A DNA stretch of 64,000 nt from IMG/VR virus record IMGVR_UViG_3300032287_004484, positions 124,001 to 188,000 of that record; one strand, 5' to 3'. Numbering within the stretch: the stretch's first letter is position 1; every line of letters begins with the position of its first letter. Below are positions 1 through 18,893 of this stretch, piece by piece. Position numbers and translations under genes: made by a program. Below the pieces are notes generated by a model. It saw only the letters and a list, made by a program, of their open reading frames with translations, was not told the DNA's origin and made no database searches.

Positions 1-2
1 GT

Positions 3-254
3 GATTTCTTTTTTTTCATTCATAATGAAACAATCAAAAATACTATTAAGATATTTATCGTGATTTTTAACATGATTAAAGTTTTCAAAATCTGATATAA
101 GCGCAATATTATATTGATCTTTAAATTTTGTTAACCAATAAGTATAAGTTATATATGAATGTTTTGATGCGTTCCTTAAATTAAAGGGTGCGCCAAAACC
201 AACTACAATAGTTTTTTTATTTTGATTAAAAGAATTCTTTTTCTCAAATCTCAT
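3..254 (-). CDS. Partial ORF running off the window edge, possibly a glycosyltransferase N-terminus
   Basis: Not in the ORF track. ATG at 254 overlaps the upstream TGA (ATGA) and reads MRFEKKNSFNQNKKTIVVGFGAPFNLRN... open to the edge. Product call rests only on context. Confidence 0.6.
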   Translation of the reverse strand, partial: MRFEKKNSFNQNKKTIVVGFGAPFNLRNASKHSYITYTYWLTKFKDQYNIALISDFENFNHVKNHDKYLNSIFDCFIMNEKKEI

Positions 255-1246
255 TCTTTATTTTCCTTATTAAATTGTTTTTCAATCCATTTAAAAGTTT
301 TTTTCATTCCATCTTCTAATTTAGTTGAAGGTTCCCAATTTAATAATTCTTTAATTAAAGTATTATCACTATTACGACTCTTAACACCTTGTGGAGCACT
401 AACATTATAAATATAAGTTGAATCTATAATATCAGTTTTAGAAATTTTCATTGCTAAATCATGCAAATATTGAATAGTAACTCCTTGACTAGAACCTAAA
501 TTAACTGGACCTTGAATTTTATTATTTATTAATTTATGTATTCCAACAATTGCATCTTCTATGTACATAAAAGATCTTCGTTGTTTACCATCTCCCCAAA
601 TTTCAACATGATCTTTTTTCATATTAATATATTCAATAATTTTTCTAATTGAAGCAGCTGGAGCTTTTTCTTTTCCATCTTTCCAAGATCCATGAGGTCC
701 ATAAACATTATGAAAACGAGCAATCGTAACTGGAACTCCAAATTCTTTATTAAGATAACGATAAAGTTCTTCACAATATAATTTATTTAATCCATACATT
801 AAATCAGGATGTGCTGGCCACGCATCACTTTCTTTTAACATAATATCTTTAGAATCATCAGTTTGAAGAGAATCGTTATAGACACAAGCAGATGAAGAGA
901 AAAAAACATGTGGCTTATTCTCACTTTTTAAAATACTTTCTATTAAATTAATATGAATCTTTCCTGATAATCCAGTTAAAAGATGATTATGTTCGCAATA
1001 TCCGATTCCACCCATATCCTCAGCTAGGTTATAAATAATATTAACACCTTGAGTAACTGAGTCAGTAATTTGAGGATTGACCATATCTCCTTTTTTACCA
1101 TGATAATTATCAGCTTCTTTAAATCTTTGATACCATTCATTTTTTGGTTTTTTATCATAAGCTTTAACTTCGTAACCTAAATCTAGACAGCTTTTAACAA
1201 GATGTCCACCTATAAATCCACCTGCTCCGCAAACAGAAACTTTCAT
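251..1246 (-). CDS. NAD-dependent epimerase, GDP-mannose 3,5-epimerase-like
   Basis: GAGGFIG, DMGGIG, SSSACVY, YGLNK, RFHNVYGP, GKEKAPAA motifs; AAGGAG RBS. Confidence 0.85.
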   Translation of the reverse strand: MKVSVCGAGGFIGGHLVKSCLDLGYEVKAYDKKPKNEWYQRFKEADNYHGKKGDMVNPQITDSVTQGVNIIYNLAEDMGGIGYCEHNHLLTGLSGKIHINLIESILKSENKPHVFFSSSACVYNDSLQTDDSKDIMLKESDAWPAHPDLMYGLNKLYCEELYRYLNKEFGVPVTIARFHNVYGPHGSWKDGKEKAPAASIRKIIEYINMKKDHVEIWGDGKQRRSFMYIEDAIVGIHKLINNKIQGPVNLGSSQGVTIQYLHDLAMKISKTDIIDSTYIYNVSAPQGVKSRNSDNTLIKELLNWEPSTKLEDGMKKTFKWIEKQFNKENKE

Positions 1247-1329
1247 TTTTTCTCCTTATATTTCGTAAAAGTTATCACTATATTAAATAATTTTATTAAT
1301 ACTTTTTTCTTATGTTTATCTTTTTCATA

Positions 1330-1593
1330 TTATAATTTAGTTTTTTTTGAATTAAAAAAAGCACTAGACGTTGAATTAGAAGCGCTACTATTATAAGTTG
1401 GACTTGATGTAAATATATTATCAACATTTAAAAAAGGTTGTGAGGTTCCAGTATATGTACTTTTATTATTAACATATTGATCAACATAAGGCACTATTGG
1501 TTTTTCTTCTTCTACTAAAATACAAAATTCATCAACATTTATTAATTCATCTTTGAATAATTTAAGAAGAATTTTAATTTTTTCTTTATTCAT
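1330..1593 (-). CDS. Hypothetical protein
   Basis: 87 aa ORF overlapping the upstream gene end in an operon. Confidence 0.6.
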   Translation of the reverse strand: MNKEKIKILLKLFKDELINVDEFCILVEEEKPIVPYVDQYVNNKSTYTGTSQPFLNVDNIFTSSPTYNSSASNSTSSAFFNSKKTKL

Positions 1594-2542
1594 GTTTTTT
1601 CATCTCATTATTATAATATAAATATTTTATTTTAGTTATTTCTGGTAATAAATCGTGAATTGATTCTTTTTCTAGTTTGATAGTATTCTCATATCCCCAA
1701 ACTTCATTTTTTAAATCTTTAATTAAATCATGTTCATTTCTTTGCTGATGAACCGTAATTTTATTAAAAATTATTTTTTGTCTTAAATTAACAAGATTTT
1801 GTAATAAGTATGCTCCCCATATATCATCATATCTTCCAATATTACATAACATCATATATTTAGATATAAGACTTCTATGAATAAAAGTATTCTGAGAATT
1901 AAATGGAGTGAATTGATATGTTGTAAAAGGTCCATCATAAAAAGAATCGTATTCATTATATTTCCAATCAGGAGAATTAGATAATCTACAGATTGCCGAT
2001 ATATCTGGATCTCCACTCCATAAATCAGCTTGAATTAACGGGATAGTCTCTACTTTTTCTTCTAATTTAATTTTTCTTTTATTTAAAAGTTGTTCTGGAA
2101 AGCCACGGTGCCAGGTTCTTTCTGTACCTTTTGTATAAGTAAAAATAGGATCAAAAAAGAATTCATTTGTAGAGTAGCAAGGAACTTTTATTTTTTTACC
2201 AACTAAAACATTTTTTCCCCAATCTGGATATGGAATATTATCATCGTCAACAGTAGCAAAAATTTCGTATTTTTTAGGATCTTGTAGAGCATACCAAAAA
2301 CCAAAATTTCTTCTCTGAATATTATTCCAACCTAAAACATCACTTAATTCTTTATTATAGTGAATTTGAGAATATGAAGAAAGATATGTTACGTGTTTTT
2401 TATCTTTAAAAGTATCTTGAAATTCTTTATCAGGAGTTTTTAAATCACCTACTATAACTAAATCCCATCCTTCAATTTCACTAAATTTTATAAGAGCCTC
2501 TGTTGGCGGATTAATTGTTGTTGTAACTATTACTTTATTCAT
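1586..2542 (-). CDS. RGP/STELLO-like protein (UDP-arabinopyranose mutase / GT75-related)
   Basis: IVTTTIN, VGDLKTP, RRNFGF, VDDDN, FNSQNT, GRYDDIWG motifs; start moved to the ATG overlapping the upstream TGA. Confidence 0.75.
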   Translation of the reverse strand: MNKVIVTTTINPPTEALIKFSEIEGWDLVIVGDLKTPDKEFQDTFKDKKHVTYLSSYSQIHYNKELSDVLGWNNIQRRNFGFWYALQDPKKYEIFATVDDDNIPYPDWGKNVLVGKKIKVPCYSTNEFFFDPIFTYTKGTERTWHRGFPEQLLNKRKIKLEEKVETIPLIQADLWSGDPDISAICRLSNSPDWKYNEYDSFYDGPFTTYQFTPFNSQNTFIHRSLISKYMMLCNIGRYDDIWGAYLLQNLVNLRQKIIFNKITVHQQRNEHDLIKDLKNEVWGYENTIKLEKESIHDLLPEITKIKYLYYNNEMKKHE

Positions 2543-3831
2543 ATTCTTATTCCCCATTTTGTATTAGATAAATAACTATTAACTGTGTTAGTTAAAAAAG
2601 AACCATCTGGACCATCAGACATTTCGTTATAAAGTTCTTCTAATAATTTATATCTCATTTCTGGATTAGCTTCTAACTGTTCTATTTTTTGATACATTTC
2701 TTCTGGTTTTGAAACTCTTAAAAAAGATGGTACTGGCTGATTTTGTTGAACATCATAAGAATCAGGTATAAATGGTATTGTTCCTCTACTAGCAACAATC
2801 CAAGGTTTACTTGTAGCCCAACCATAATTAGTAGGCATAATTACTGTATATCTTGTATTTCTCATAATATCGTATAACTCATCAGTGCTTTTTACAAAAC
2901 CCTTAAATCTGGGATCACCTAAAGTTCTTGATTCATGCCAATAACCATAAATAGAATTTTCTTTATTAATGTCTGGATCTAAAACCCATCTTTTTAATTC
3001 CATATATCTAAAATCTTCTACTGGATTAAGAGCATCTGATTCTAATTGAGCTGAAATAACGGAGAATTTAAAAGTCTTTTCTCTTCTAAAATCACTATCA
3101 AGATTAACGTCAATTAAATCTATTTTTTCAATTCCATCATAAGTGCTATCCCAATTTTGTATTTCTTGAATAGGAGGTGGACCAAATTTAACAACTCTTT
3201 TCCAAACATGTTTTCCATTAGCTTGAGAAAGGAACCTTACTGGTGGATTAGTAATTTCTCTTGGATAGATTTGATGACGAAAGTGTCTTGGATCAGTACA
3301 GAGAATAAAATATGGAAATGGTTTATAATTAGAAAGAAAAGCACATAAAGGAGCAGTGTATCTAACATTCATTGCTCTTGGAACAGCGATTCCTTCTTGT
3401 CTTAATTTTGGCATATAATATGGAATAGAAACAGATGAATTAGAACCTTGACTCATAAAAAAGAATCCTAAATCTATTTCTAAATTAGCAGTCTTTAATC
3501 CATCAATTATTTTTTGACAACAACCCATTACTAAATCATAGTGTTCTGGTTTAGTAAAACTTTCTTTTGGATCTACAGGTGGCTTATATCCTATATCTCT
3601 TCCTAAAACGATCTTATTTTCTGGATCGATTTCTTTGACATGAGATAAATTTCTTTTTAAATCTTTTTCAGAAGAAGAAATTAAAATTATTTTTTTTACT
3701 GATTTTAATTTTAATAACCATAATAATGTTTTATAATAATCACTTTGTCCTGTATAACCTTGGTCACGACTACCAAACATCATCATTGAACCTAAAATAC
3801 CTAATACAACTGTTAAATCTTGATCTTTCAT
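2539..3831 (-). CDS. GT-B glycosyltransferase, T4 DNA beta-glucosyltransferase-like
   Basis: ILCTDPR, WATSKPW, IPFIPDSYD and FLRVSKPEEMYQKIEQL resemble the T4 BGT C-terminal half as recalled; GAGGAG RBS. Confidence 0.55.
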   Translation of the reverse strand: MKDQDLTVVLGILGSMMMFGSRDQGYTGQSDYYKTLLWLLKLKSVKKIILISSSEKDLKRNLSHVKEIDPENKIVLGRDIGYKPPVDPKESFTKPEHYDLVMGCCQKIIDGLKTANLEIDLGFFFMSQGSNSSVSIPYYMPKLRQEGIAVPRAMNVRYTAPLCAFLSNYKPFPYFILCTDPRHFRHQIYPREITNPPVRFLSQANGKHVWKRVVKFGPPPIQEIQNWDSTYDGIEKIDLIDVNLDSDFRREKTFKFSVISAQLESDALNPVEDFRYMELKRWVLDPDINKENSIYGYWHESRTLGDPRFKGFVKSTDELYDIMRNTRYTVIMPTNYGWATSKPWIVASRGTIPFIPDSYDVQQNQPVPSFLRVSKPEEMYQKIEQLEANPEMRYKLLEELYNEMSDGPDGSFLTNTVNSYLSNTKWGIRI

Positions 3832-3891
3832 ATGCTCCTCTACATTTATTATTATATTCTATTGTATATAAAAATAATAAAAAGGTTTAAA

Positions 3892-4242
3892 TTATTTTTC
3901 AATATTACTAGTGACTTCTACTATTTCAACAGTAGGATCATTAAATAATTCAATAAAACATGTACCTCTATAACGACCACTATCCCATCTCATAGTTATT
4001 TCCCACCATTGATTATTAGAATTTTTTTCAAAGAATTGACTTGTTGTTACAGGTAAAGAAAACTTCTTACATATTTCTTCTGCTACATCTTCAATAAATC
4101 TTAAATCGTCTTCTGACTTTGTATGAAATATCACCCATTTTTTTAAAGATTCATTTTTACCCTTTTTTACATTTTTTGATATTATTTCAAAATTATACTC
4201 TCTATTAATACCATGCATATCAACTAAATTAAATTTTTCCAT
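3892..4242 (-). CDS. Hypothetical protein
   Basis: 116 aa ORF, TATAAT 8 nt upstream. Confidence 0.65.
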   Translation of the reverse strand: MEKFNLVDMHGINREYNFEIISKNVKKGKNESLKKWVIFHTKSEDDLRFIEDVAEEICKKFSLPVTTSQFFEKNSNNQWWEITMRWDSGRYRGTCFIELFNDPTVEIVEVTSNIEK

Positions 4243-4285
4243 ATAAAAGTATTATATTGTTTTAAAAATAAAAAAAGGAGATTTT

Positions 4286-4498
4286 ATGTTTATAAAAGAA
4301 ATGACTATTGGTGAAGCGTTAGAGGTTCATCCCGAAGTTGGAATGGTTTTATCTGCTTACCACCTCGGTGGATGTTCGCATTGTTCTGTAAATGAGGTAG
4401 AAACTATCGAGCAAGTTTGTGAAGGATATGGAGTTGATGTTGATGAATTATTATGCTCTATGAATTCACTATTAAATGAAGATGAACAATTAGATTAA
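4286..4498 (+). CDS. DUF1858 / hybrid-cluster-associated redox disulfide domain protein
   Basis: MTIGEALEVHPE, GCSHC, ETIEQVCEGYGVD; AAGGAG RBS. Confidence 0.85.
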   Translation: MFIKEMTIGEALEVHPEVGMVLSAYHLGGCSHCSVNEVETIEQVCEGYGVDVDELLCSMNSLLNEDEQLD

Positions 4499-5038
4499 AA
4501 TTTCTTTTAATTGTTTTATAGTATCTTTACTATTAAGGTGGAGAATTGATTTTCCACCTTTTTCTTTAAATTCATCACAATTAGATTTTAAATCATCAAT
4601 TAAAATAGAATTTGAGTTAGCATATAGTTTTTTATCACTTTTTTTATTAACAAAATTAATATGATCAGTATCTAAGTATTGTGAAACATTATTTTTTTCT
4701 AACCAATTCTTTTTTTGTTGACTAAAATCTTCATAATTTTCTTTTCTAGCCGTAGAAGATAAAATTCCTAATTTAAAATTATATTCCTTTTTTAATTCAA
4801 AAATATTTTCAATTAATGAATTTTCTTCTAATACATCTAAAGTTTCAAATAATTTTTCTTTTTTAATTAAATCCCAAATTTTTTGTTTTTGATCTTCAGT
4901 TAAATTATGTTTTTTGATAATTTCTTTTTTCATTTTTTCAAAATCAGCAAGTACACCATCCATATCTAAATAAATGATGTACTGATCTAATTTTTTACTT
5001 TCTAAAATAGTATCTAAATATTTTTTAAAGATTGACAT
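4490..5038 (-). CDS. HAD-family 5'(3')-deoxyribonucleotidase-like protein with N-terminal leader
   Basis: YLDMDGVLADF, ILSS, KKNWL, ILIDD motifs; starts MSIFKKYLDTILE. Confidence 0.85.
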   Translation of the reverse strand: MSIFKKYLDTILESKKLDQYIIYLDMDGVLADFEKMKKEIIKKHNLTEDQKQKIWDLIKKEKLFETLDVLEENSLIENIFELKKEYNFKLGILSSTARKENYEDFSQQKKNWLEKNNVSQYLDTDHINFVNKKSDKKLYANSNSILIDDLKSNCDEFKEKGGKSILHLNSKDTIKQLKEILI

Positions 5039-5041
5039 CTA

Positions 5042-5743
5042 TTAAGAAAACTGTGAATATATTTTTTTAAATTTTTGTATTTCTTTATCGTTTAAATTTA
5101 ATTCTTGTAATACTCCATCTTCATTATAACTATTTAAAATCTCTTCTATAGAAAAATTATAATTATTAACGTTATCATCAATTTCCATAATAAGATCTTC
5201 TGCATTATCCCATTTTTTTCCAATAACATTTACAATATATTTTATAGTTATTCTTGGATCTTTTAAAATAGAATTTTCTAACGATTTTTTAAAATCAGAT
5301 TCAATTTTTTTCTTATTCTCATAAAAAGAATATAAATAAGATAAAGATATACTATTAGATATATCACTTTTTTGTTCATCAGTTAATGCTTCTTTTTGTT
5401 TAGCTATTTTATCTATATTTTGTTCATTAATTTTACTATCAATTGTTTGACTATGCACCATTTGAATTTGTTTTAAATATTCTTTATAATCTTTATTGGA
5501 CAAAGTTTTTGTTTTATTTTTTTCTTTATCTTCGTCTTGTAATTTTTTTAAAGATTCTTCATCAGAAAGTGGTTCAGATTCTGGTTGATACGGTGTTGTT
5601 TCAATTCTATAATCTTTATCACGATATTGCCATCCTGGCTTAACGGTTGGTTTATTTGATCCGCCCCTAGGAGCTCTTATATCTCTAATTTTATCCCCAA
5701 CTGCTTCTTGAATTATCGTTAAATATTTATTAAATAGTGACAT
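5042..5743 (-). CDS. Hypothetical protein with N-terminal leader (putative internal head protein)
   Basis: Starts MSLFNKYLTIIQE. Confidence 0.7.
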   Translation of the reverse strand: MSLFNKYLTIIQEAVGDKIRDIRAPRGGSNKPTVKPGWQYRDKDYRIETTPYQPESEPLSDEESLKKLQDEDKEKNKTKTLSNKDYKEYLKQIQMVHSQTIDSKINEQNIDKIAKQKEALTDEQKSDISNSISLSYLYSFYENKKKIESDFKKSLENSILKDPRITIKYIVNVIGKKWDNAEDLIMEIDDNVNNYNFSIEEILNSYNEDGVLQELNLNDKEIQKFKKIYSQFS

Positions 5744-5804
5744 GCTTTTATCCTAATGATTTAATATAATATTTTTACAATAACTCCGTAAAAAATTCTT
5801 TTTT

Positions 5805-6545
5805 TTATGGAGTCCAATCACCGCCCATTCTTTTTTTAATAGCTTTAACATAATTACTAGCTTCTAATAAAGAATCATAATTACCGCAATCAAACCAAGA
5901 ACAATCTATTTCTACAATATTTAGACGATCCTCATCAGCATATAAATTAGATAGTTCAGCAATTTCTGTTTCTCCTCTTGAAGATGGTTTTAGTGAATTA
6001 ACTTTTTCTAAAACATCACTTGGATAATAATAAAAACCAGGAACAGCTAAATTACCAATGTATTCTTTTGGTTTTTCAACTATTCTTCGAGTGTCTTTAT
6101 GTATTACTCCATATTGAGAAGGATCAAAGACTCTTAATCCAGTGATCATTGCTTTATTTTGAGAAATAGATTCTTCTAATTCTTTTTTTATTTGATGAGT
6201 AAAATTAAAAAATAAATTATCGCCTAAAATAAGGATAGCTCCATCTCCTTTTAACCATTTCTTTTCTTCTACTATTTTAAAAGCATCTGGTAGTCCAGTG
6301 GGTGTATCTTGAATGAAATAACGATCTATATTAGAACTAAATACATCTCTAAAATCAGAAAAAAAATCATTTTTACAAATAAGAGAAATTCTTTCTACTC
6401 CTAAAGCTTTTAAAACTTGAAATGGATACCACACCATTGGTTGATCATATACTGGTAATAATTGTTTTGATGTGTATTTTGTAAAATTAGAAAGACGAGT
6501 GCCATTTCCGCCGGCTAAAATAATTGCTGATAAATTGTGTTCCAT
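5805..6545 (-). CDS. rmlA: Glucose-1-phosphate thymidylyltransferase
   Basis: LAGGNGTRL, SKQLLPVYDQPM, LGDN, VEKP, SSRGETEI, WFDCG. Confidence 0.9.
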   Translation of the reverse strand: MEHNLSAIILAGGNGTRLSNFTKYTSKQLLPVYDQPMVWYPFQVLKALGVERISLICKNDFFSDFRDVFSSNIDRYFIQDTPTGLPDAFKIVEEKKWLKGDGAILILGDNLFFNFTHQIKKELEESISQNKAMITGLRVFDPSQYGVIHKDTRRIVEKPKEYIGNLAVPGFYYYPSDVLEKVNSLKPSSRGETEIAELSNLYADEDRLNIVEIDCSWFDCGNYDSLLEASNYVKAIKKRMGGDWTP

Positions 6546-6590
6546 ATTATTAATATATTATTAAAAAAAAAATAATGTTTATTTTTATAT

Positions 6591-6601
6591 CATAAATATA
6601 T
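6591..6601 (+). promoter_or_regulatory. Putative T4-type late promoter CATAAATATAT
   Basis: Same 11-mer at 9150-9160(-) and 23489-23499(-); CTAAATATAT at 23933-23942(-) and 48127-48136(+); resembles T4 TATAAATA. Confidence 0.5.
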
Positions 6602-6625
6602 TTTATAAAAAATAAGGAGAAAAAA

Positions 6626-6835
6626 ATGTCTCAATTTAATAAATATCTAAATATAGTGCAAGAGGCATCTTATGCTGATACAGAAAAAGCTAATGATCCG
6701 AAGCGTTTTGAAGATACTAGGAAGGCTTCTAAAGATAAGCGAGGATTTGTTAGAAACCCTAATAGTGAAACTAATTCTCAAAAAATAGAAAGATTAAAAA
6801 AAGAAGAAGAAGAAAAGAAAAAACAAAGAAGATAA
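6626..6835 (+). CDS. Small charged protein with N-terminal leader (putative internal head protein)
   Basis: Starts MSQFNKYLNIVQE; AAGGAG RBS; CATAAATATAT upstream. Confidence 0.75.
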   Translation: MSQFNKYLNIVQEASYADTEKANDPKRFEDTRKASKDKRGFVRNPNSETNSQKIERLKKEEEEKKKQRR

Positions 6836-6837
6836 TA

Positions 6838-7836
6838 TTACATCCATTCTTTATTTTTAAGAGTCCAATCTACTAAATGTTTCAACCCTTCTTCAAAAGA
6901 GAAGGGTGGAATCCAGCCTAAAGATCTTAAAAGAGCATCATTAATTCCATATTTTCGATCATATCCAGGACGAACTTTAGAATCGTCAATGGTATCTATT
7001 GGATAAACATTTATATTCATTATATTAGCAATTTTTTGAATTAATTCTAAATTATTAATTGAATCATTACCAGCAACATTAAATTTAAGAGGAGTTTCAA
7101 GAAAATTTTTTTTCTCGTAAAAAACTGGATCTACTTTATTATCTATAAATATAAGAGCATCACTTAAATTTCTACAATCTAAATAAACTCTTGATCCTAC
7201 TTTTCCACCAGAAGTATATACTGGTATAGTTTTACCTTGACTAAGGTATGAAATTGTTTTAGGTATCATTTTTTCTGGATTCTGCCTCTTACCGAACATG
7301 TTCATGCAATGAATTATAATACTTGGTATTCTATATGTTCTCCAATAAGAAAAGATTATATTATCTTGAGCTGCTTTACTAGCACTATAAGGATTACTAG
7401 GGTGATACTCCCACCCTTCTCGATGGAGATCATCTCCAAAGACTTCTCCATAAACCTCATCAGTAGATAGATGAATAAATTTAGATGGATTTATTTTTCT
7501 TACAAAATCTAAAACGCTTAGTATTAATTGAACATTATTATTAATAATATCATCTGGAGATTCGACTGATGTTGCTACACTAGAATCACTAGCAATAGAA
7601 AATACAGTATCTATGTGTCCTATTTTAGAAATTAAAGTTTCACTAAATGGAACTCTTAAATCATGTCTAAAATTAGTATAATTAGGATGATTATTAAAAA
7701 TTAATCTTTGAGAATCACCTTTTCTAGTTAGTGAATCAATTCCTATAACTTGGTATCCTCTACTGAGGAGATCTTCAACTAAGTGATGTCCAACAAAACC
7801 AGAACTACCAGTAACTAAAACTTTTTTTATATCCAT
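6838..7836 (-). CDS. rmlB: dTDP-glucose 4,6-dehydratase
   Basis: GSSGFVG, STDEVYG, PSNPYSASK, QNPEKMIP, RPGYDRKY. Confidence 0.88.
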   Translation of the reverse strand: MDIKKVLVTGSSGFVGHHLVEDLLSRGYQVIGIDSLTRKGDSQRLIFNNHPNYTNFRHDLRVPFSETLISKIGHIDTVFSIASDSSVATSVESPDDIINNNVQLILSVLDFVRKINPSKFIHLSTDEVYGEVFGDDLHREGWEYHPSNPYSASKAAQDNIIFSYWRTYRIPSIIIHCMNMFGKRQNPEKMIPKTISYLSQGKTIPVYTSGGKVGSRVYLDCRNLSDALIFIDNKVDPVFYEKKNFLETPLKFNVAGNDSINNLELIQKIANIMNINVYPIDTIDDSKVRPGYDRKYGINDALLRSLGWIPPFSFEEGLKHLVDWTLKNKEWM

Positions 7837-7841
7837 ATTTA

Positions 7842-7904
7842 ATTATACTCAAAAAAGATAATTAATGTTTATAATTAAACATAAAAATAAAAAGTAAATA
7901 AAAT
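7842..7904. promoter_or_regulatory. Back-to-back divergent promoters of the TAAACA class
   Basis: Minus strand TAAACA(7871-7866)-N18-TATAAT-N5-ATG of rmlB; plus strand TAAACA(7876-7881)-N17-TAAAAT. Confidence 0.6.
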
Positions 7905-7912
7905 TACTATGT

Positions 7913-8419
7913 ATGAGTGAAAAAAGTTTTTTTGAAGAAATTATTATTGAGGAACATGGAGTGAGACCAGTTTATTTAATAGTGTTTTTCATATTTTGTG
8001 AGTCCATTATTGCTCTTACAAGTTATGTTACTTCACCAGTTGCAAGATTACATGTCGAACCTAATATAAGTTCAGAATCAATCGCTTTATCAAAAGGAAC
8101 TGTAGTTAATAAAATTGGTGAAAAGGATATGTTTATTAAAGTTACTACTGATGGAAAAGAAGGATATGTTAATAAACTATTTTTATCAGATAATCCGCCT
8201 TCTGGTAAAGTTTCTTTTTCATCAGATATTGATCAGTCTACATCTATTAAAGCTCGCGCTAGAGCATCTAATTTTACTCAAACAGCCGCTGCGAGAGGTT
8301 TTAGTGAATCTCAAATTCTAAGAACAAGAGGCGGTGCTAACGATTATGATATGGATTCTATTAGATGGTTAGAATCTATTAAAATAGATGAAGAAGAAAT
8401 TAAAAAATTTAATAACTAA
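7913..8419 (+). CDS. Secreted SH3-domain protein
   Basis: Hydrophobic signal-like segment (true start may be the GTG of VRPVYLIVFF), SH3b-like IKVTTDGKEGYV, ARARASNFTQTAAARG. Confidence 0.7.
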   Translation: MSEKSFFEEIIIEEHGVRPVYLIVFFIFCESIIALTSYVTSPVARLHVEPNISSESIALSKGTVVNKIGEKDMFIKVTTDGKEGYVNKLFLSDNPPSGKVSFSSDIDQSTSIKARARASNFTQTAAARGFSESQILRTRGGANDYDMDSIRWLESIKIDEEEIKKFNN

Positions 8420-9144
8420 ATTTGATCTTTAATTGATTCCATTTTAAAAGTTAAAAAAATATAAAAATCTTCAAAATTAAGAAAACGATCTGGATAAATA
8501 ATTTCTGAACAATTATAAGTTATTATTCTATTTAGATTAGCCATTCCTTTTTTATAAAAAACTATCACTGGAAAATTATTTTGAAAAACAAATTTTAGTA
8601 ATCCTTTTTTAAAGGGATTAGGTTTATCACTAAAAGATCTTTCTCCTTCTGGCATAAATCCTATATTACAGTATTTTAAATAATCTTCAGCCTCATCAAT
8701 AGATTCTTTAATTCTTACACCATCTTTTAAAAGAATCCCCGCTTTTTGAAGAAAAAAATAAAGAAGTCCACTACGGTACATCGCTTTATCAAAAAGAAAA
8801 GCACAATTACCTTCTAATGGATCAAAAGGATATTCAAATTCATTAACGTGATTAAATATTACTATATGTCCATTTTTAGGAATCATATTTTTTGGATATC
8901 TTCTATATATAAAAATTAAAAGAAAAATTCTACAAACTATATTCCAAATTTTTAAAAAGAAAAATAAAAACACTATATTTATCTTTTTAAAATCTTTTCT
9001 TTTTAAGAATGGTAATATCGATATAAAATATAAAAAACCTATTATTGTTCCACTTAAATAAACTACTAATGAATAATAAATTCTTTTTATTATTGAATCT
9101 TTTCTTGAATTTAAATTAGGTGAATCACCTTTATAAACGATCAT
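8416..9144 (-). CDS. PlsC-like lysophospholipid acyltransferase
   Basis: N-terminal TM segments, IFNH, MPEGERS, FKKG. Confidence 0.75.
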   Translation of the reverse strand: MIVYKGDSPNLNSRKDSIIKRIYYSLVVYLSGTIIGFLYFISILPFLKRKDFKKINIVFLFFFLKIWNIVCRIFLLIFIYRRYPKNMIPKNGHIVIFNHVNEFEYPFDPLEGNCAFLFDKAMYRSGLLYFFLQKAGILLKDGVRIKESIDEAEDYLKYCNIGFMPEGERSFSDKPNPFKKGLLKFVFQNNFPVIVFYKKGMANLNRIITYNCSEIIYPDRFLNFEDFYIFLTFKMESIKDQI

Positions 9145-9167
9145 ATAAAATATATTTATGTTTTTTT

Positions 9168-9722
9168 TTAATGATTATTCAAATATTCTTGTAATGATGG
9201 TGCATTTCTATCTTTATTAGAAATCGTTATTTCTCTTATATTAACTGGTGGCATTCTTTTAATAAAGACTTCACTCTGTAAAAGAGGAATACCATTTATT
9301 ATTCTTTCATTTTCGGGAACTCTTGGAGATGATACAGAATATAAAACTCTATTATCATTTTCAAGAGTAAAAAATCCATGAGCACAGCCTTCTGGTACAT
9401 ATACTGATTGTAGAGTCGAATCTGTTAAAAAAACGACTTCTGTTTCTAAATAAGATGGTGATCCTTTTCTAAGATCAATAAAAAAATCATAAATTGATCC
9501 TTTCATTACTGTCACCAATTTTGCTTGTGCAAAATTACCTTCTTGAAAGTGTAAACCTCTAAGAACATGTTTTTTAGATTGAGAAATATTTTGCTGAATA
9601 AAGTGTTTAAAGTATTTATCTTTAAAATCATCTTGTAGATATTCAGAGAAAAAGCCTCTATCATCTTCAAAACTTTTATGGTCTAATAAAAAAGAATCTT
9701 GAATTTTTAAGTTAGTTATCAT
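9168..9722 (-). CDS. rmlC: dTDP-4-dehydrorhamnose 3,5-epimerase
   Basis: FEDDRGFFSE, VLRGLHFQ, QAKLV, DLRKGSPSY, GCAHGF. Confidence 0.9.
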   Translation of the reverse strand: MITNLKIQDSFLLDHKSFEDDRGFFSEYLQDDFKDKYFKHFIQQNISQSKKHVLRGLHFQEGNFAQAKLVTVMKGSIYDFFIDLRKGSPSYLETEVVFLTDSTLQSVYVPEGCAHGFFTLENDNRVLYSVSSPRVPENERIINGIPLLQSEVFIKRMPPVNIREITISNKDRNAPSLQEYLNNH

Positions 9723-9788
9723 AGTTTATTATATTTTATAAATGTATTTATTTAAAAATAAATAATAAAAAATATAAAATATAATTAT

Positions 9789-10424
9789 ATGGACTTAACT
9801 TTTGGAATAGTTACTAAATATGATGATAATAATCGTTTATTAGAAATAATAAATTCTATAAAAAATCTTCATATAAAAAACTATGAAATTATTTTTATTG
9901 GCGATGGAATAACAAGTGAAAATATTATTGGAGAAAATATTAAACATATAAAATTTGATGAAACTATAAAACAAGGTTGGATCACTAAAAAAAAGAATAT
10001 TATAGCAAAATCAGCAAAATATGAAATAATTGTTATGATGCATGATTATCATGTTTTTGATAAAGATTGGTATGAAAAATTTTTAATATTTGGTGATAAT
10101 TGGGATATATGTTGTACATCACAAATTATGATAGATGGTAGAAGGAATTTTGTAGATTGGGCCTTATGGGATAAACCTGGTTTTGGAAAAGGTCAAACAT
10201 GGGATTATAACGACTGGAATGAAACAAAATATATGTATATAAGCGGAGCTTTCTTTTTAGTTAAAAAATATGTTTTATTAAATGAACCTTTTAATGAATC
10301 TTTAACTTGGAATCAATCAGAAGATGTTGAGTGGTCTTTAAGAGTTAGAGAAAAATATAAAATCGTATGCAATGGATCTAGTGTTGTAAGACATAATAAG
10401 TCACATAGACATAATTATATGTAA
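9789..10424 (+). CDS. GT-A (GT2-like) glycosyltransferase
   Basis: LTFGIVT, WITKKKN, MHDY, EDVEWS. Confidence 0.75.
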   Translation: MDLTFGIVTKYDDNNRLLEIINSIKNLHIKNYEIIFIGDGITSENIIGENIKHIKFDETIKQGWITKKKNIIAKSAKYEIIVMMHDYHVFDKDWYEKFLIFGDNWDICCTSQIMIDGRRNFVDWALWDKPGFGKGQTWDYNDWNETKYMYISGAFFLVKKYVLLNEPFNESLTWNQSEDVEWSLRVREKYKIVCNGSSVVRHNKSHRHNYM

Positions 10425-10425
10425 T

Positions 10426-11799
10426 ATGAAAAATAAACTTGTAATTTTTGATTTAGATGGAGTATTAATTGATTCTAGAGATTTACATTATTACTCATTA
10501 AATAATGCTTTAAGTAAAATTGATAATAAATATATAATATCTAAAGATGAACATCTATCTATATTTGACGGATTAAGTACAACTAAAAAATTAAATTTAT
10601 TAGCTGAAATTAAAAAACTACCTAAAGAGTATCATCAGATCATTTGGGAAGATAAACAAAAAGCAACAATAGAATTATTAAAAAAAATTAATAAAAACAA
10701 AATCGCAATTTCTATAATTAATGAATTAAAAAAAATAGGATGGAAAGTAGCGGTTGCTTCTAATAGTATTAGAGAAACTTTAAGAGTATCTTTACATAGC
10801 ATTGGAATATTACATTTAATAGATTATATGGTTAGTAATGAAGATGTAATTAATCATAAACCTCATCCAGAAATGTATTGGAAGTGTATGTTATCTTTAA
10901 ATGCTTTACCATCTAATACTTTAATAGTTGAAGATTCACATATAGGAAGGCAAGCTGCATTATCTTCTGGAGCTAATCTTTATGCTATTAAAGATTCTTA
11001 TGAATTAAATTATAAAACATTTTTTAATGAACTTGAAAAGTTTGATAATAAAAAACAAAAAATAAATATACCTTGGAGTAATAAAAAAATGAACGTATTA
11101 ATCCCAATGGCTGGGGCTGGATCTAGATTTTCTCAAGCAGGATATACTTTTCCAAAACCATTAATTGAAGTTAATGGAAAACCAATGATTCAAAAAATAG
11201 TTGAAAATCTTAATATAGACGCTCATTATATTTTTATAGTACAAAAAGAACATTATGACAAATATAATTTAAAGCAATTATTAAATTTAATATCTCAAGA
11301 CTGTGATATAATTATTGTAGATTCTATTACTGAAGGAGCAGCTTGCACTGCTTTATTAGCAAAAGAAATAATAAACGATGATCAACCTCTTTTAATTGCT
11401 AATTCTGATCAAATTATGGATTGGAATTCTAATGAATGTTTATATGCTTTTTCTAATGATAATATTGATGGAGGAATTTTAGTTTTTGAATCAACACACC
11501 CTAAATGGTCTTTTGTTAAATTAGATTCTAATAATTTTGTAATAGAAGTTGCAGAAAAAAATCCTATTTCAAACATAGCTACTACAGGAGTTTATTATTG
11601 GTCAAAAGGTTCTCATTTTGTTAAATACGCAGAACAAATGATTACTAATAATATTAGAGTTAATAATGAATTTTATATATGTCCTATTTTTAATGAAGCT
11701 ATTAAAGATAATAAAAAAATTAAAATAAAATATGTTGATAAAATGTGGGGAATAGGTACCCCAGAAGATTTAAAATATTATTTGGAAAATAATAAATGA
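10426..11799 (+). CDS. HAD phosphatase fused to sugar nucleotidyltransferase
   Basis: N-half FDLDGVL, KPHPEMY, VEDS; C-half IPMAGAGSRF, PKPLIEV, ANSDQ, EFYICP, GTPEDL. Confidence 0.85.
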   Translation: MKNKLVIFDLDGVLIDSRDLHYYSLNNALSKIDNKYIISKDEHLSIFDGLSTTKKLNLLAEIKKLPKEYHQIIWEDKQKATIELLKKINKNKIAISIINELKKIGWKVAVASNSIRETLRVSLHSIGILHLIDYMVSNEDVINHKPHPEMYWKCMLSLNALPSNTLIVEDSHIGRQAALSSGANLYAIKDSYELNYKTFFNELEKFDNKKQKINIPWSNKKMNVLIPMAGAGSRFSQAGYTFPKPLIEVNGKPMIQKIVENLNIDAHYIFIVQKEHYDKYNLKQLLNLISQDCDIIIVDSITEGAACTALLAKEIINDDQPLLIANSDQIMDWNSNECLYAFSNDNIDGGILVFESTHPKWSFVKLDSNNFVIEVAEKNPISNIATTGVYYWSKGSHFVKYAEQMITNNIRVNNEFYICPIFNEAIKDNKKIKIKYVDKMWGIGTPEDLKYYLENNK

Positions 11800-12497
11800 A
11801 AAATATAAATGAATATTTAAATATGCAAAAAAATCAATATGAATTTGAAGCCTCAAACTGGAGTCTACAAAATTTAGATCATGTTGTAGGAAGTTATCAA
11901 GAACATAACAATTGGAAAGATTATGATGATTACCTTTTTAAAGATATAAATACTAATAATTTAGTTGGATTAGAATATGGATGTGGTCCAGCAAGAAATC
12001 TAATTAGATTTAATAATAGATTTTTAAAAATTGATGGATGTGATATTTCTAAAAATAATATTGATAAAGCTGAATTAAACTTAAAACATAATAACATAAA
12101 TAATTATTCTTTATTTATTTGTGATGGAAAAAGTATTCCAGCACAAAGTGAATTTTATGATATAATTTTTAGTGTTATATGTTTACAGCATATAGCTTGT
12201 TATGATATTCGTTATAGCATATTTAATGATATATATAGATGTTTAAAAAAAGATGGATATTTTTGTTTTCAAATGGGCTTTGGAAAAAAAAATAATTTTA
12301 ATGTTTCTAATTATTATGATAACTCTTTTGACGTTAATGTTACTAATGGTCTACATGATGTTATAATTGAAGATGAAAATTATTTAATTAATGATTTAAA
12401 AGATAAAATAGGATTTAGAAACTATATTTCTTATATAAGACCTACTGGACCTGGAGATTATCACGAAAATTGGATTTGGGTGCAAGCTCAAAAATGA
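11796..12497 (+). CDS. Class I SAM-dependent methyltransferase
   Basis: LEYGCGPAR, GCDIS, YDIIFSVICLQH, LKKDG. Confidence 0.85.
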   Translation: MKNINEYLNMQKNQYEFEASNWSLQNLDHVVGSYQEHNNWKDYDDYLFKDINTNNLVGLEYGCGPARNLIRFNNRFLKIDGCDISKNNIDKAELNLKHNNINNYSLFICDGKSIPAQSEFYDIIFSVICLQHIACYDIRYSIFNDIYRCLKKDGYFCFQMGFGKKNNFNVSNYYDNSFDVNVTNGLHDVIIEDENYLINDLKDKIGFRNYISYIRPTGPGDYHENWIWVQAQK

Positions 12498-12940
12498 TAT
12501 TAATATCACATAGAGGAAACTTAAATGGTCCAAATATATCTTTTGAAAATAATCCAGAATACATTTTATCTTGTATCAATGATAATTTTGATTGTGAAAT
12601 TGATTTTTGGTTATTTAATAATAAATTATATCTAGGACACGATGAACCTCAATATCAAATTAATTTAGATTTTTTTAATAATAAAAACTTATGGATACAT
12701 TGTAAAAATAATTTATCTTTAGATTTTTGTTTAAAAAACAACCTAAGATGTTTTTTTCATAATAATGATGATTATACTATTACAAATAAAGGATATATTT
12801 GGGCATATCCAGGAAAAGAGTTTAATTCAAATTTATGTATTTCAGTTTTACCAGAAAAAAATAATTTTTTTATTCCAAAAAATATCTATGGAGTATGTTC
12901 TGATTATATAATTAAAATAAAGGAAATTTTAAATGTTTAA
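12494..12940 (+). CDS. Glycerophosphodiester phosphodiesterase / PI-PLC-like protein
   Basis: ISHRGN, CEIDFW, LGHDEP, LWIHCKN, GVCSD; start moved to the ATGA overlap. Confidence 0.75.
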   Translation: MILISHRGNLNGPNISFENNPEYILSCINDNFDCEIDFWLFNNKLYLGHDEPQYQINLDFFNNKNLWIHCKNNLSLDFCLKNNLRCFFHNNDDYTITNKGYIWAYPGKEFNSNLCISVLPEKNNFFIPKNIYGVCSDYIIKIKEILNV

Positions 12941-13727
12941 AGAAATAGATTATAATAAAAGAATACTAATAGGTACACCACTAGTTGATTGGAAGTGTTA
13001 TAAAAATGAACACGAAGCATGGTTGATAAACAGACACGAAATAAAAAATACTTTTAAAAATTGTGAATTTTTTTCTGCTTTTGAAATAAATAAAACTGGA
13101 TTAGATCCTTTTAATTCTGTAATTCAAAAATTAAATGAAATAAATGGAAAATATTGGACTTATTCAATTAATGATAATGAAAAAGAAATAAGAGAAATAA
13201 ATAGACTTATAAGAATAGAAACTGGTAGAAATTTAGTTAGAGAATATGCTCAAAGAAAAAGAATAACTAAGGGTGGTTCTTGGGGAGAAGATTGTACTTC
13301 TGAAAATAATTCGGTTTTTAATTTTGATGCTATATTATATGTGGATAGTGATATGATATTAACAAAACAAGTGATAGAAGGAGTTATATCTATTGATCAT
13401 CCATTGGTTGGTTGTAGAACATATTACGGATTACCGCCTGGAAAAATAATTAATCATAATCCTTTAATTGAAGAACACTGGACTACAGCTGGACTTTTAT
13501 TAGTAAATTCACCTGCATATTATGATTTGCCTTGGTATCATAATGCTTATTTAAATTTAAGCGATGATCCAAGTTTTCAATATATGTCATCAAGATTAAA
13601 TGAAATGAAAAACGATTTAACAATTAATCAACCTTATGGGATGACATGGGTTAGAAAAGATATTTATATAGATCATGTTGGACAAATAGGATTATTAGAA
13701 CATAGAAATTTACCAAATAGAGAATAA
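12933..13727 (+). CDS. Putative GT-A glycosyltransferase
   Basis: ILIGTP, GRN, YVDSD, SDDP. Confidence 0.6.
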   Translation: MFKEIDYNKRILIGTPLVDWKCYKNEHEAWLINRHEIKNTFKNCEFFSAFEINKTGLDPFNSVIQKLNEINGKYWTYSINDNEKEIREINRLIRIETGRNLVREYAQRKRITKGGSWGEDCTSENNSVFNFDAILYVDSDMILTKQVIEGVISIDHPLVGCRTYYGLPPGKIINHNPLIEEHWTTAGLLLVNSPAYYDLPWYHNAYLNLSDDPSFQYMSSRLNEMKNDLTINQPYGMTWVRKDIYIDHVGQIGLLEHRNLPNRE

Positions 13728-13729
13728 AA

Positions 13730-14362
13730 TTATAAAATTAATTCTTCATAATCTTTAGGTACTCCATTTTTAAAACAAAAATGTTTAGATTGATTTAATC
13801 CTATCCATCCTTCAGCTCTATGTCTATGTTCGTAATTAGGAGATGGTAGATTTTTTATAAAATTTAATGTTGTCCACCAAAAAGTTCCAGCATAAAAATT
13901 ATTATGTCCAACATGTTCTGGACCCGAACTATTCATCCAATATATTCCAACGGTGTCATAACCTTCAATCATTTTATTAATACAATCGTTCCAATTTAAA
14001 ACATTATATTTTGTCATAGTTTCACGCCAAGGAATATTTGGATAATCTTGACTATAAGAACCCTTAGTATGAGCATATAAAATATATCCATCGTTGTATT
14101 GAGAAAAATTATATAATTCTTGTTGCGTAACTTGTTCCCATCCATTATTTTTAATAGAAACTATTTCATAATTATAATTATTAACGTTTAAAAAGTTTTT
14201 TACGTTATTAATATTTTCATTATTTCCAACAAAACCTATTTTTACAGGAGATGTAAGTGAATCATATAATTTAGATTTTTTTAATGCCCTAAAATGCTGA
14301 TCAACTGGTGTTTGCCACAATCCATCAGCATATATATGATAAAAATGATAAATTCTCACCAA
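13730..14362 (-). CDS. Putative glycosyltransferase (paralog of 14356-15015)
   Basis: YHFYHIY, GWEQVT, LYAHTKG, YAGTFWW, AEGWIG. Confidence 0.6.
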   Translation of the reverse strand: MVRIYHFYHIYADGLWQTPVDQHFRALKKSKLYDSLTSPVKIGFVGNNENINNVKNFLNVNNYNYEIVSIKNNGWEQVTQQELYNFSQYNDGYILYAHTKGSYSQDYPNIPWRETMTKYNVLNWNDCINKMIEGYDTVGIYWMNSSGPEHVGHNNFYAGTFWWTTLNFIKNLPSPNYEHRHRAEGWIGLNQSKHFCFKNGVPKDYEELIL

Positions 14363-15015
14363 GATATTACTCTTCCTATTTCATCACCTGGATGAGTAGG
14401 AGTCCAATCATATTGATTAAAGGGTTCATTGTTTTTTTCAACCGATGGTTTTAAAAAACCTATCCATCCTTCTGCATCATAACGATTTCCTCTAGCAACT
14501 TTTGGAAAATTTCTAATATATTTACAATGTGTCCACCAAAAAGTTCCAGCATAATATCCATCCATAGATTCATCTAATTTACTAGGTATCGGAATATAAT
14601 AACAACCTACTCCAGAATGACCATTATTTAAAAAATTAACACAATCGCTCCAACGAACAACATTATAATATTCCATGCTTTTTCTCCATCTAACATGAAG
14701 ATCGTTATAATTAACTGCTGTTTTAGTGTGCGTATATAAAACTAAACCATCATTTTCTTTTGAATGATAATATAAAGAATCTAAAGTTTCTTGTTCCCAT
14801 CCATCATCTGTTTCATTACAAAAATTAATATTTAAATTATAATTTCTTATAAAATCTTTTACGATGTTTCTATTATCAATATTTCCTACTATTCCAACGT
14901 TAAAAGATTTAAGATTATTAATTAAACCAAATCTAATTAAAGTATCAAAATGTTCTTGAAGAGGTTCTTGCCATCTTCCATCAGCATATACATGATAAAA
15001 ATGATACAAATTCAT
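14356..15015 (-). CDS. Putative glycosyltransferase (paralog of 13730-14362)
   Basis: YHFYHVY, GWEQET, LYTHTK, YAGTFWW, AEGWIG. Confidence 0.6.
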   Translation of the reverse strand: MNLYHFYHVYADGRWQEPLQEHFDTLIRFGLINNLKSFNVGIVGNIDNRNIVKDFIRNYNLNINFCNETDDGWEQETLDSLYYHSKENDGLVLYTHTKTAVNYNDLHVRWRKSMEYYNVVRWSDCVNFLNNGHSGVGCYYIPIPSKLDESMDGYYAGTFWWTHCKYIRNFPKVARGNRYDAEGWIGFLKPSVEKNNEPFNQYDWTPTHPGDEIGRVISW

Positions 15016-18884: not shown

Positions 18885-18893
18885 TTTTATTGA

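Follow-up and report, generated by a model that had tools for sequence, protein, structure and literature searches.

The DNA analyzed here is a stretch of 64,000 nucleotides (referred to as the window) covering positions 124,001 to 188,000 of IMG/VR record IMGVR_UViG_3300032287_004484, a complete virus record of 290,274 bp with a GC content of 25.6%. Unless stated otherwise, positions are those of the window. We focused on the block at positions 4286 to 9144, which starts with a DUF1858 protein of 70 amino acids (aa) (4286 to 4498, + strand). This protein matched PF08984 (3.8e-9; 36.9 bits, cutoff of 32.2) and TIGR03980 (62.3 bits, cutoff of 44.95) and contains the CxxC motif CSHC of this small redox-disulfide protein family. 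It is followed by an NT5C/HAD-type 5'(3')-deoxyribonucleotidase of 182 aa (4490 to 5038, − strand; phrog_2643 at 4.5e-27 and NT5C at 2.6e-5), an open reading frame (ORF) of 233 aa (5042 to 5743, − strand), an RmlA-like glucose-1-phosphate thymidylyltransferase (5805 to 6545, − strand; NTP_transferase at 2.4e-38), a basic ORF of 69 aa (6626 to 6835, + strand), an RmlB-like dTDP-glucose 4,6-dehydratase of the SDR family (6838 to 7836, − strand; GDP_Man_Dehyd at 2e-43), an SH3 protein of 168 aa (7913 to 8419, + strand), and a PlsC/LPLAT-type acyltransferase of 242 aa (8416 to 9144, − strand). An RmlC-like dTDP-4-dehydrorhamnose 3,5-epimerase (9168 to 9722, − strand; PF00908 at 1.2e-45) belongs to the same sugar block. 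The 233-aa ORF had no Pfam or PHROG hit, and a search of the Atlas gave nothing usable; its 5' end is one arm of a 75-nucleotide inverted repeat, the other arm of which is the 5' end of the 69-aa ORF. DUF1858, the SH3 protein, and the acyltransferase matched no PHROG family and are thus unusual phage cargo, whereas the RmlB- and RmlC-like genes fall into the existing phage families phrog_540 and phrog_8784, respectively. The block had no DNA match in 50,697 phage records.

The flagged genes are part of a wider sugar-nucleotide and glycan island (251 to 13727) that also contains a second SDR epimerase/reductase (251 to 1246), a GT2 glycosyltransferase, a HAD plus nucleotidyltransferase fusion, and a methyltransferase. 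The block order is conserved in L141, a syntenic relative, which however lacks the nucleotidase. The best NCBIfam hits of the three Rml-like ORFs were TIGR01207 (RmlA, 2.5e-52), TIGR01181 (RmlB, 1.9e-61), and TIGR01221 (RmlC, 1.2e-39), but all of them fell below the equivalog cutoffs. No clear RmlD was found; the second SDR could supply the 4-reductase step, and the product may be a 6-deoxyhexose other than rhamnose. We infer that these enzymes, together with the glycosyltransferase, the methyltransferase, and the acyltransferase, make and attach a modified 6-deoxyhexose to a surface glycan or lipid of the infected cell, for example to stop superinfection. Alternatively, the Rml, glycosyltransferase, and nucleotidase genes may serve the hypermodification of the phage's own DNA with a sugar. 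This possibility is suggested by the joint presence of a deoxyribonucleotidase, sugar-nucleotide enzymes, and a glycosyltransferase, by a DNA methylase near the block in L141, and by the existence of sugar-modified DNA in T4-type phages. We consider it unlikely, since a membrane-bound PlsC-type acyltransferase and a membrane-anchored SH3 protein in the same conserved block point to the envelope, and since no hydroxymethylase or DNA glycosyltransferase family was identified in the window.

A first-pass annotation, made from the sequence alone, had proposed that the DUF1858, SH3, and PlsC-like proteins and a tail fiber encoded further downstream resemble Leptospira proteins, that the DNA belongs to a large T4-like phage of Leptospiraceae, that such phages are poorly described, and that the three former proteins are unusual auxiliary genes. 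The observation was confirmed, since all four proteins and their motifs are present where they had been noted, although the strength of the resemblance differs widely among them. For DUF1858 and the SH3 protein, it is far beyond chance. All named hits of DUF1858 are Leptospira proteins (66 to 69% identity), and all five metagenome-assembled genomes (MAGs) tested contain it at 66 to 69% identity. In a sample of 301 Spirochaetota genomes, Leptospiraceae genomes showed 59 to 70% identity (E values of 1e-24 to 1e-30), whereas the best genome outside the family showed 48% and the remaining ones 43% or less. The DUF1858 tree, based on only 77 columns, was poorly resolved, and the clade containing the window sequence sits in a polytomy beside the Leptospiraceae clade rather than inside it. 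At the DNA level, the gene is 70 to 80% identical to about 90 of 114 genomes of the family, and the SH3 gene is 75 to 76% identical to the MAGs G001, G002, and G005. These are the only two genes in the 100 kb tested that match Leptospiraceae at the DNA level: no others were found in window positions 1 to 20000, and nothing matched in window positions 20001 to 60000 or genome positions 20001 to 40000.

The SH3 protein carries the motif KARARAS..FTQTAAARG. The SH3_3 profile (PF08239) scored 26.1 bits, just under the cutoff of 27, there were weak profile hits to cell wall-binding SH3 domains in the PDB, and the AlphaFold2 model shows a beta-barrel at residues 36 to 87 (pLDDT of about 80 to 88) that is preceded by an N-terminal hydrophobic helix and followed by the conserved KARARAS..AAARG helix and a C-terminal helical part. 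All 12 loci retrieved from GTDB are from Leptospiraceae or Leptospirales MAGs (40 to 72% identity); the phage protein is 57 to 72% identical to the Leptospiraceae operon copies and 40 to 44% identical to the two most distant Leptospirales loci. In the tree, a viral clade of 34 rows (support of 100/99) lies on a long branch, several starred nodes deep inside the MAG sequences. All four sampled lineages of this clade are large, low-GC phage contigs, whereas a sampled member of the sister group is bacterial and has the full host gene context. In the hosts, the operon comprises a 506-aa protein, a CHASE2 adenylate/guanylate cyclase, the SH3 protein, and an M48 peptidase, the SH3 gene sitting between those of the cyclase and the peptidase. 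The SH3 and M48 genes are adjacent in 12 of 12 host loci and apparently fused in one locus (L012). The phage carries only the SH3 gene of this module, in which the signal peptide is replaced by a longer N terminus with a hydrophobic helix. It is a copy of one component of a host envelope protease and cyclase operon rather than a metabolic gene. That the transfer ran the other way, with both genes being phage inventions acquired by Leptospiraceae, is very unlikely. The trees are rooted only by the choice of outgroup, but DUF1858 is present in about 90 of 114 family genomes, and in all 46 sampled family genomes listed with a hit, at a uniform identity indicative of vertical inheritance, the SH3 gene sits in a conserved chromosomal operon beside lgt, trpF, and mutS in 12 loci, and the viral SH3 clade is deeply nested.

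To assess whether the phage SH3 protein may bind the host peptidase, we modeled the complex of its residues 36 to 168 with the M48 peptidase of G001. The resulting ipSAE was 0.86, compared to 0.00 for the best of three controls; the runs shared at least 67% of their contacts, and the pLDDT of the partner was at least 69. This mark was reached by 51 of 78 solved complexes and 2 of 108 mismatched pairs. The invariant motif and the C-terminal helices that form the predicted interface are retained in the phage protein. The model supports binding, although a pass does not tell which family member binds, and the phage protein is a close cousin of the presumed true partner.

The other two proteins add little to the host assignment. 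The acyltransferase scored 25.5 bits with PF01553 (cutoff of 23). A word search returned 8 hits, all unnamed, and the protein showed only 28 to 31% identity, although collinear over the full length, to an acyltransferase of the MAGs G001, G002, G003, and G005. Its catalytic motif reads H-x4-E instead of H-x4-D; the glutamate is found in the phage protein and all of its phage-type kin, whereas the Leptospiraceae homologues have aspartate, and, with regard to the EGTR-like motif of such enzymes, a PEGERS motif is present. The tail fiber of 356 aa (56652 to 57722, + strand) matched phrog_9777 (tail fiber, 2.5e-13), and its C-terminal domain carries RDRFQGHRH and NGTPRTG. Its likeness to Leptospira proteins is real but restricted to the motif and domain level: 35 of 114 Leptospiraceae genomes match at 32 to 48% identity, but none of the MAGs G001 to G005 does, and the best global hits are unnamed metagenomic proteins at 54 to 66% identity.

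We next analyzed the phage type. The genome encodes a Gp23-family major capsid protein (genome positions 191870 to 193162; PF07068 at 2.2e-54, 181.5 bits, cutoff of 24.4), a gp20-type portal (phrog_213 at 1.3e-50; tblastn matches in 2211 phage records, mostly T4-type by organism name), and a gp21-type prohead protease (62573 to 63226, + strand; PF03420 at 2.1e-20, 70.3 bits, cutoff of 27). The portal is only 24 to 27% identical to any phage on record; the closest known systems are T4-type phages and distant jumbo relatives such as Pseudomonas phage PA5oct, Rhodothermus phage RM378, and Microcystis phage Mel-JY01. In contrast to T4, which has a family B polymerase (gp43), the polymerase hits are to DnaE/Pol III alpha-like phage polymerases, split into ORFs of 549 and 680 aa, so that the designation T4-like holds for the head module only. 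No contractile tail sheath was found in the genome with PF04984, the single sheath model used, which may not cover gp18-type sheaths. According to the literature, LE3 and LE4 are the only known lytic phages of Leptospira, and LE1 is the only temperate one with a genome sequence (PMC6078989). In the literature searched, only LE1, LE3, and LE4 are known as Leptospira phages, and no paper paired "jumbo phage" with Leptospiraceae. The genomes of LE1, LE3, and LE4 are roughly 50 to 75 kb in size, whereas the present phage has 290 kb and T4-type head genes, and no DNA similarity was found in the phage collection. They share the putative host family, but the likely host here is an uncultured, low-GC freshwater lineage of Leptospiraceae and not a cultured Leptospira such as L. 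biflexa.

Best-hit taxonomy and gene trees, which had been proposed beforehand as the test of a Leptospiraceae origin, did not place these genes with other phyla, and the interpretation of the first-pass annotation is therefore supported. Our analysis shows that DUF1858 and the SH3 gene were captured from Leptospiraceae and that related large phages have kept both, whereas the host and the functions of the block, including those of the sugar genes, DUF1858, and the leader sequences described below, are inferred. With fair confidence, we propose a freshwater jumbo phage that builds a T4-type head and that most likely infects uncultured, low-GC freshwater Leptospiraceae close to G001, G002, and G005, following the familiar logic that captured host genes betray the host. 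There is no direct host link: about 64 kb of CRISPR arrays next to Cas1, in 45 of 51 Leptospiraceae loci retrieved from the family's GTDB genomes, gave no spacer match, arrays elsewhere in these genomes not being covered, and the closest MAGs (G001, G003, and G005) showed no Cas1 at all. In addition, the GC content of the phage is 6 to 8 points below that of the candidate hosts' loci and lower than in any Leptospiraceae locus seen, and the SH3 capture predates the split of at least two phage lineages, so that it points to the host of their ancestor. These data, along with the lack of a fiber match in the closest MAGs, leave room for an alternative in which the phage infects another low-GC freshwater bacterium and acquired both genes second-hand, for example by recombination with phages of Leptospiraceae, in which case they would say nothing about its present host. 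Both genes are shared by several diverged phage lineages, so that spread between phages is possible, and SH3 identity between the two phage groups (68 to 70%) is higher than that of their replication genes (43 to 47%). We regard this alternative as unlikely, because two independent genes point to the same family, the predicted M48 interface is retained, the fiber's C-terminal domain does occur in Leptospiraceae, and a decoy of a family-specific envelope protein is useful only in cells with the M48 and CHASE2 module, which was found only in Leptospirales. The phage DNA occurs in freshwater metagenomes from 4 studies, and two of the runs that hold it (X1 and X3) also hold contigs 98 to 99% identical to the G001 locus; this co-occurrence likewise speaks against the alternative, although it rests on contigs only, which are short, fragmentary, and of low depth. 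No run on record as RNA holds the stretch.

In the proposed model, the SH3 protein would be a membrane-anchored copy of the host envelope protein that binds the host M48 peptidase and so diverts or blocks this envelope protease and signaling module during infection. DUF1858 would be a small thiol-disulfide carrier that works with the phage thioredoxin (24794 to 25126, − strand; TIGR01068 at 3.8e-23) and the adjacent class II, B12-dependent ribonucleotide reductase (25123 to 26979, − strand; TIGR02505 at 1.4e-79; phrog_367 was also matched in this region), or that protects redox-sensitive proteins. A redox role is in line with the existence of selenoprotein forms with CxxU (PMC9312934), with the differential expression of the L. 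interrogans homologue in a mutant of the peroxide-stress regulator perRB (bioRxiv 10.1101/2020.11.06.371039), and with the location of a thioredoxin gene one or a few genes upstream of DUF1858 in the relatives L127 and L128.

Finally, three ORFs of the block, namely, the NT5C nucleotidase (24.1 bits), the 233-aa ORF (28.0 bits), and the 69-aa ORF (29.6 bits, the best score), start with a leader that resembles the T4 capsid-targeting sequence. We infer that these three proteins, of which the 233-aa ORF product is probably a head-packaged protein, are loaded into the prohead, trimmed by the gp21-type protease, which is the enzyme expected to cut such leaders, and injected with the DNA. In agreement with the rules established for T4 (PMC9026906), the leader is located at the extreme N terminus of otherwise unrelated proteins and has aromatic residues at positions 4 and 7 followed by an I/V/L-x-E site. 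In total, at least 7 ORFs of this phage and 9 to 10 in related phage contigs start with M-[SK]-x-F-x-x-Y-[LIM]-x-x-[IV]-x-E, with scores of 17 to 30 bits in the phages compared to a top score of 9.3 bits in 484 kb of host DNA.

The 290,274-bp IMG/VR virus record, of which the window covers bases 124001-188000, is rated 100% complete by CheckV and has a GC content of 25.6%. The identical ends (1-81 and 290194-290274) are only 81 bp long, and this direct terminal repeat may be an assembly overlap of a circularly permuted genome rather than true terminal repeats. A simple ORF call, made with genetic code 11 only, gave about 420 ORFs that cover 93% of the genome. A tRNA scan and an Rfam search of the window returned nothing, and the two tRNAs of the genome lie outside it. 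The head genes are of the T4 type and comprise a Gp23-family major capsid protein (PF07068, 2.2e-54), a gp20-type portal (phrog_213), and a gp21-type prohead protease at window 62573-63226 (PF03420). The portal gave tblastn matches in 2211 phage records, mostly T4-type by organism name, but at only 24-27% identity. A search for a tail sheath with PF04984 found none with this query. The replicative polymerase, in contrast, is not T4-like but a DnaE-like enzyme that is split into two ORFs of 549 and 680 aa, about 3.9 kb apart (L110:2860-4509 and L110:8373-10415 of a segment of this genome, i.e., genome 42860-44509 and 48373-50415), both of which match phrog_405. The element is therefore a jumbo phage with a T4-type head module that is otherwise very distant from any phage on record. 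We considered whether the record could be a bacterial fragment or plasmid, but this was rejected in view of the T4-type head genes, the CheckV rating, and the dense coding.

All ORFs and motifs quoted in the first-pass annotation were found to be present. On the plus strand, the flagged block encodes a DUF1858/TIGR03980 CxxC protein (4286-4498), a 69-aa ORF (6626-6835), and the SH3 protein (7913-8419), whereas the minus strand encodes an NT5C-type deoxyribonucleotidase (4490-5038), a 233-aa ORF without an assigned family (5042-5743), an RmlA-like protein (5805-6545), an RmlB-like protein (6838-7836), a PlsC-type acyltransferase (8416-9144), and an RmlC-like protein (9168-9722). An Atlas search with the 233-aa ORF gave nothing usable. 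The block is part of a larger sugar island at about 250-13,700 of the window, which also holds a second SDR, a GT2 glycosyltransferase, a HAD plus nucleotidyltransferase fusion, and a methyltransferase. A blastn search of window 4000-9500 against 50,697 phage records gave no match. However, L141, a diverged relative on a phage contig (72% identity in SH3), keeps the order DUF1858, RmlA, RmlB, SH3, acyltransferase, RmlC, and the block is therefore a stable part of this phage lineage.

We then assessed whether these genes resemble those of Leptospira. For DUF1858, every named protein among the 84 word-search hits belongs to Leptospira or a Leptospira MAG, at 66-69% identity, and all five candidate host MAGs (G001 to G005) carry the gene at 66-69% identity. 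In a sample of 301 Spirochaetota genomes there was a clean gap, since Leptospiraceae genomes scored 59-70% identity, whereas the best genome outside the family scored 48% and the rest 43% or less. At the DNA level, the gene is 70-80% identical to about 90 of the 114 family genomes. The DUF1858 tree, which has only 77 columns and is weak, places the window clade in a polytomy with other unnamed clades and a 39-row Leptospira/Leptospiraceae clade. Two of these unnamed clades were sampled, and both are low-GC (24-25%) phage-like contigs that share other genes with this phage.

For the SH3 protein, the named hits are MAGs designated Leptospiraceae bacterium or Spirochaetia bacterium. A pattern scan of one genome per GTDB species retrieved 12 loci, all of which are Leptospiraceae or Leptospirales MAGs, at 40-72% identity, whereas a scan of IMG/VR with the SH3 alignment returned no confirmed relative. 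In a tree rooted on the two most distant Leptospirales sequences, the window and 13 near relatives form a clade with 100/100 support, inside a 34-row clade with 100/99 support that lies several starred nodes deep among the MAG sequences, next to the group of G001, G002, and G005. The 34-row clade was sampled four times (L123, L125, L142, and L141), and all four are large low-GC phage contigs, whereas a sampled member of the sister group is bacterial. L123 and L142, on contigs of 193 kb and 138 kb, represent a second lineage of large low-GC (27%) freshwater phages that shares replication genes with this phage at 33-64% identity; the L123 contig shares a sigma factor, primase, and helicase with this phage at 33-64% identity. 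This lineage carries the SH3 gene with the original host-type signal peptide, near ThyX and an acetyltransferase. At the DNA level, the SH3 gene is 75-76% identical to those of G001, G002, and G005. In the 100 kb of phage DNA compared in this way, DUF1858 and SH3 are the only substantial matches (150-330 nt) to Leptospiraceae; as only two candidates per genome are scored in this family-wide DNA search, it is not a valid test for spacers.

The other two proteins named in the first-pass annotation are less informative. The word search with the acyltransferase found only 8 hits, all unnamed. The protein is 28-31% identical to its counterparts in the candidate MAGs, but collinear over the full length, and shares with them an unusual NH-x-NE-x-[DE]-[YF]-P-[FY]-D motif; it may have the same origin but is not diagnostic. 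The likeness of the tail fibre to Leptospira proteins noted in the first-pass annotation was correct, since its C-terminal domain recurs in Leptospira proteins of about 450-530 aa that end with RRDRFQGHWH ... NGTPRTGK (examples are at L135:253-1761, G052:C14:17253-22982, and G078:C4:22100-27536, all in Leptospira genomes). In total, 35 of 114 genomes match, at up to 48% identity, and the genes often form tandem arrays of 3-4 paralogues; they could be prophage or tailocin fibres. However, an exhaustive search showed that the closest proteins are metagenomic ones at 54-66% identity, with no taxon attached to the 10 global hits inspected, and that the Leptospira proteins relate to representatives ranked about 26th to 32nd. 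The fibre had no match in G001 to G005, nor by tblastn in the phage records. A 608-aa ORF at window 49739-51565 with a C1q-like domain near its C terminus (Pfam C1q at 1.7e-5; phrog_15750) may be a second receptor-binding fibre.

Two independent genes trace to one bacterial family, which inherits both vertically, and capture by a phage of Leptospiraceae is therefore the simplest reading. The interpretation of the first-pass annotation, a large phage of Leptospiraceae, is thus supported, although the host itself is inferred. The candidate hosts are low-GC (31-34%) freshwater MAGs, the phage DNA occurs in freshwater metagenomes from four studies, and two runs that hold the phage also hold short contigs 98-99% identical to the G001 locus. 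Against this, we found no spacer directed at the phage. Of 51 Cas1 neighborhoods retrieved from the family's genomes, 45 held arrays (about 64 kb), and none matched; the best alignment, 31 nt with 3 mismatches, occurred in overlapping alignments to a single phage site and so looks like a short tandem repeat. The closest MAGs show no Cas1. Taken together, we consider the host assignment likely. ORF GC content was also explored as a pointer to recent captures and was abandoned; the higher-GC island at genome 20-35 kb has no DNA match to the candidate hosts.

Leptospiraceae include the agents of leptospirosis and common freshwater saprophytes, yet only LE1, LE3, and LE4 are known as Leptospira phages in the literature consulted (PMC6078989), none of them large, and we found no paper that pairs jumbo phages with Leptospiraceae. 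This would be a 290-kb phage lineage for the family, with at least two related lineages in lake metagenomes. Host-derived genes in a phage are in themselves ordinary; what is new is the phage-host pair, the idea of an SH3 decoy, and the leader family described below.

In the hosts, the SH3 gene always precedes an M48 peptidase gene (12 of 12 loci) and usually follows genes for a CHASE2 adenylate/guanylate cyclase and a 506-aa protein. This conserved chromosomal operon of Leptospirales (L008:2131-7223 and the same region of the host loci L006, L007, L009-L015, and L143), for which we found no description, is thereby exposed as an unstudied envelope module. In L012 the SH3 and M48 genes appear fused as one 428-aa ORF. 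The L006 locus (contig CAMCZP010000016.1, 33.6% GC) comes from a lake-type MAG (isolate MsH-30apr19-140) titled Leptospira interrogans serovar Manilae, but most of its proteins at this locus are 69-95% identical to those of the Leptospiraceae MAG RE-18aug17-155, and the species label looks wrong. Of the operon, the phage holds only the SH3 gene, and in its copy the signal peptide is replaced by a longer N terminus with a hydrophobic helix. Searches of PDB sequences gave only weak hits for SH3. A predicted complex of phage SH3 residues 36-168 with the G001 M48 peptidase scored 0.86, against 0.00 for the best of three controls; the runs shared at least 67% of their contacts, and the partner's pLDDT was at least 69. 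That mark was reached by 51 of 78 solved complexes and 2 of 108 mismatched pairs. This supports binding but does not show it, and a close cousin of the true partner can pass.

Our reading is that the phage protein acts as a decoy or adaptor for the host's envelope protease and cyclase module, which offers a concrete protein pair for testing. What the analysis shows is the origin of the two genes, whereas the host, the binding of the M48 peptidase, the roles of DUF1858 and of the sugar genes, and the packaging and cleavage of the leader-bearing proteins are inferred. A more far-reaching possibility, which we regard as tentative and rather unlikely, is that a family of large freshwater phages of uncultured Leptospiraceae carries a membrane-anchored mimic of this envelope protein that docks onto the M48 peptidase and so takes over or silences a CHASE2 cyclase and protease signaling module, while a T4-style capsid-targeting leader is used to inject a varied set of proteins, including a deoxyribonucleotidase. 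If true, this would be a route of host takeover not described for phages.

A thiol-disulfide role is likely for DUF1858, although it is inferred. The protein keeps the CxxC motif, selenoprotein forms with CxxU exist (PMC9312934), and the L. interrogans homologue is differentially expressed in a mutant of perRB, a peroxide-stress regulator (bioRxiv 10.1101/2020.11.06.371039). Related phages place a thioredoxin just upstream of the gene, and this phage has a thioredoxin beside a class II ribonucleotide reductase at 24794-26979. Searches of PDB sequences returned only uncharacterized NMR structures for this family. The sugar genes most likely build a modified 6-deoxyhexose for a surface glycan or lipid, with DNA modification as the rival reading.

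At least 7 otherwise unrelated ORFs start with the same 13-residue leader, M-[SK]-x-F-x-x-Y-L-x-I-[IV]-Q-E. Three of them lie in the flagged block (4490-5038, 5042-5743, and 6626-6835), two elsewhere in the window (22875-23468, minus strand; 24037-24285, plus strand), and two elsewhere in the genome (21177-21494 and 266193-267131, both minus strand), with weaker cases at genome 38581, 55235, and 142576. The leader also heads 9-10 ORFs in related phage contigs (L123, L125, and L141) and is absent from 484 kb of host DNA, where the top score is 9.3 bits, against 17-30 bits in the phages. It has aromatic residues at positions 4 and 7 followed by an I/V/L-x-E site, which are the features reported as decisive for the T4 capsid-targeting sequence and its cleavage by gp21 (PMC9026906), and the phage has a gp21-type protease. 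These proteins are therefore probably loaded into the head and injected, as inferred from sequence, and the motif suggests that the T4 system for packaging internal proteins extends to very distant jumbo phages. A 75-nt inverted repeat at window 5702-5777 and 6593-6667 (78% identity) consists of this leader plus its upstream region, its arms being the 5' ends and upstream regions of two leader-bearing ORFs, which suggests a reused promoter, RBS, and leader cassette.

The genome also contains large paralogous gene families. One has 16 members, mostly small ORFs on alternating strands, in an island with raised GC3 (0.25-0.41, against a genome mean of 0.14) at L109:1747-12461 of a second segment of this genome (genome 21.7-32.5 kb); this island has no DNA match to the candidate hosts. 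Further families of 15, 11, and 11 members lie mostly near the left end (L108:525-11817, a third segment, i.e., genome 525-11,817), and none of these families has a PHROG function. The ORF at window 39860-41233 has the highest GC content in the genome (43%) but a GC3 of only 0.09, so that the excess comes from amino acid composition and not from a foreign origin. Finally, three adjacent large ORFs of 880, 1203, and 658 aa (window 31553-34195, 34242-37853, and 37887-39863) are paralogues of one another, and a second trio of large paralogues lies at genome 64768-72240; they are probably structural proteins.
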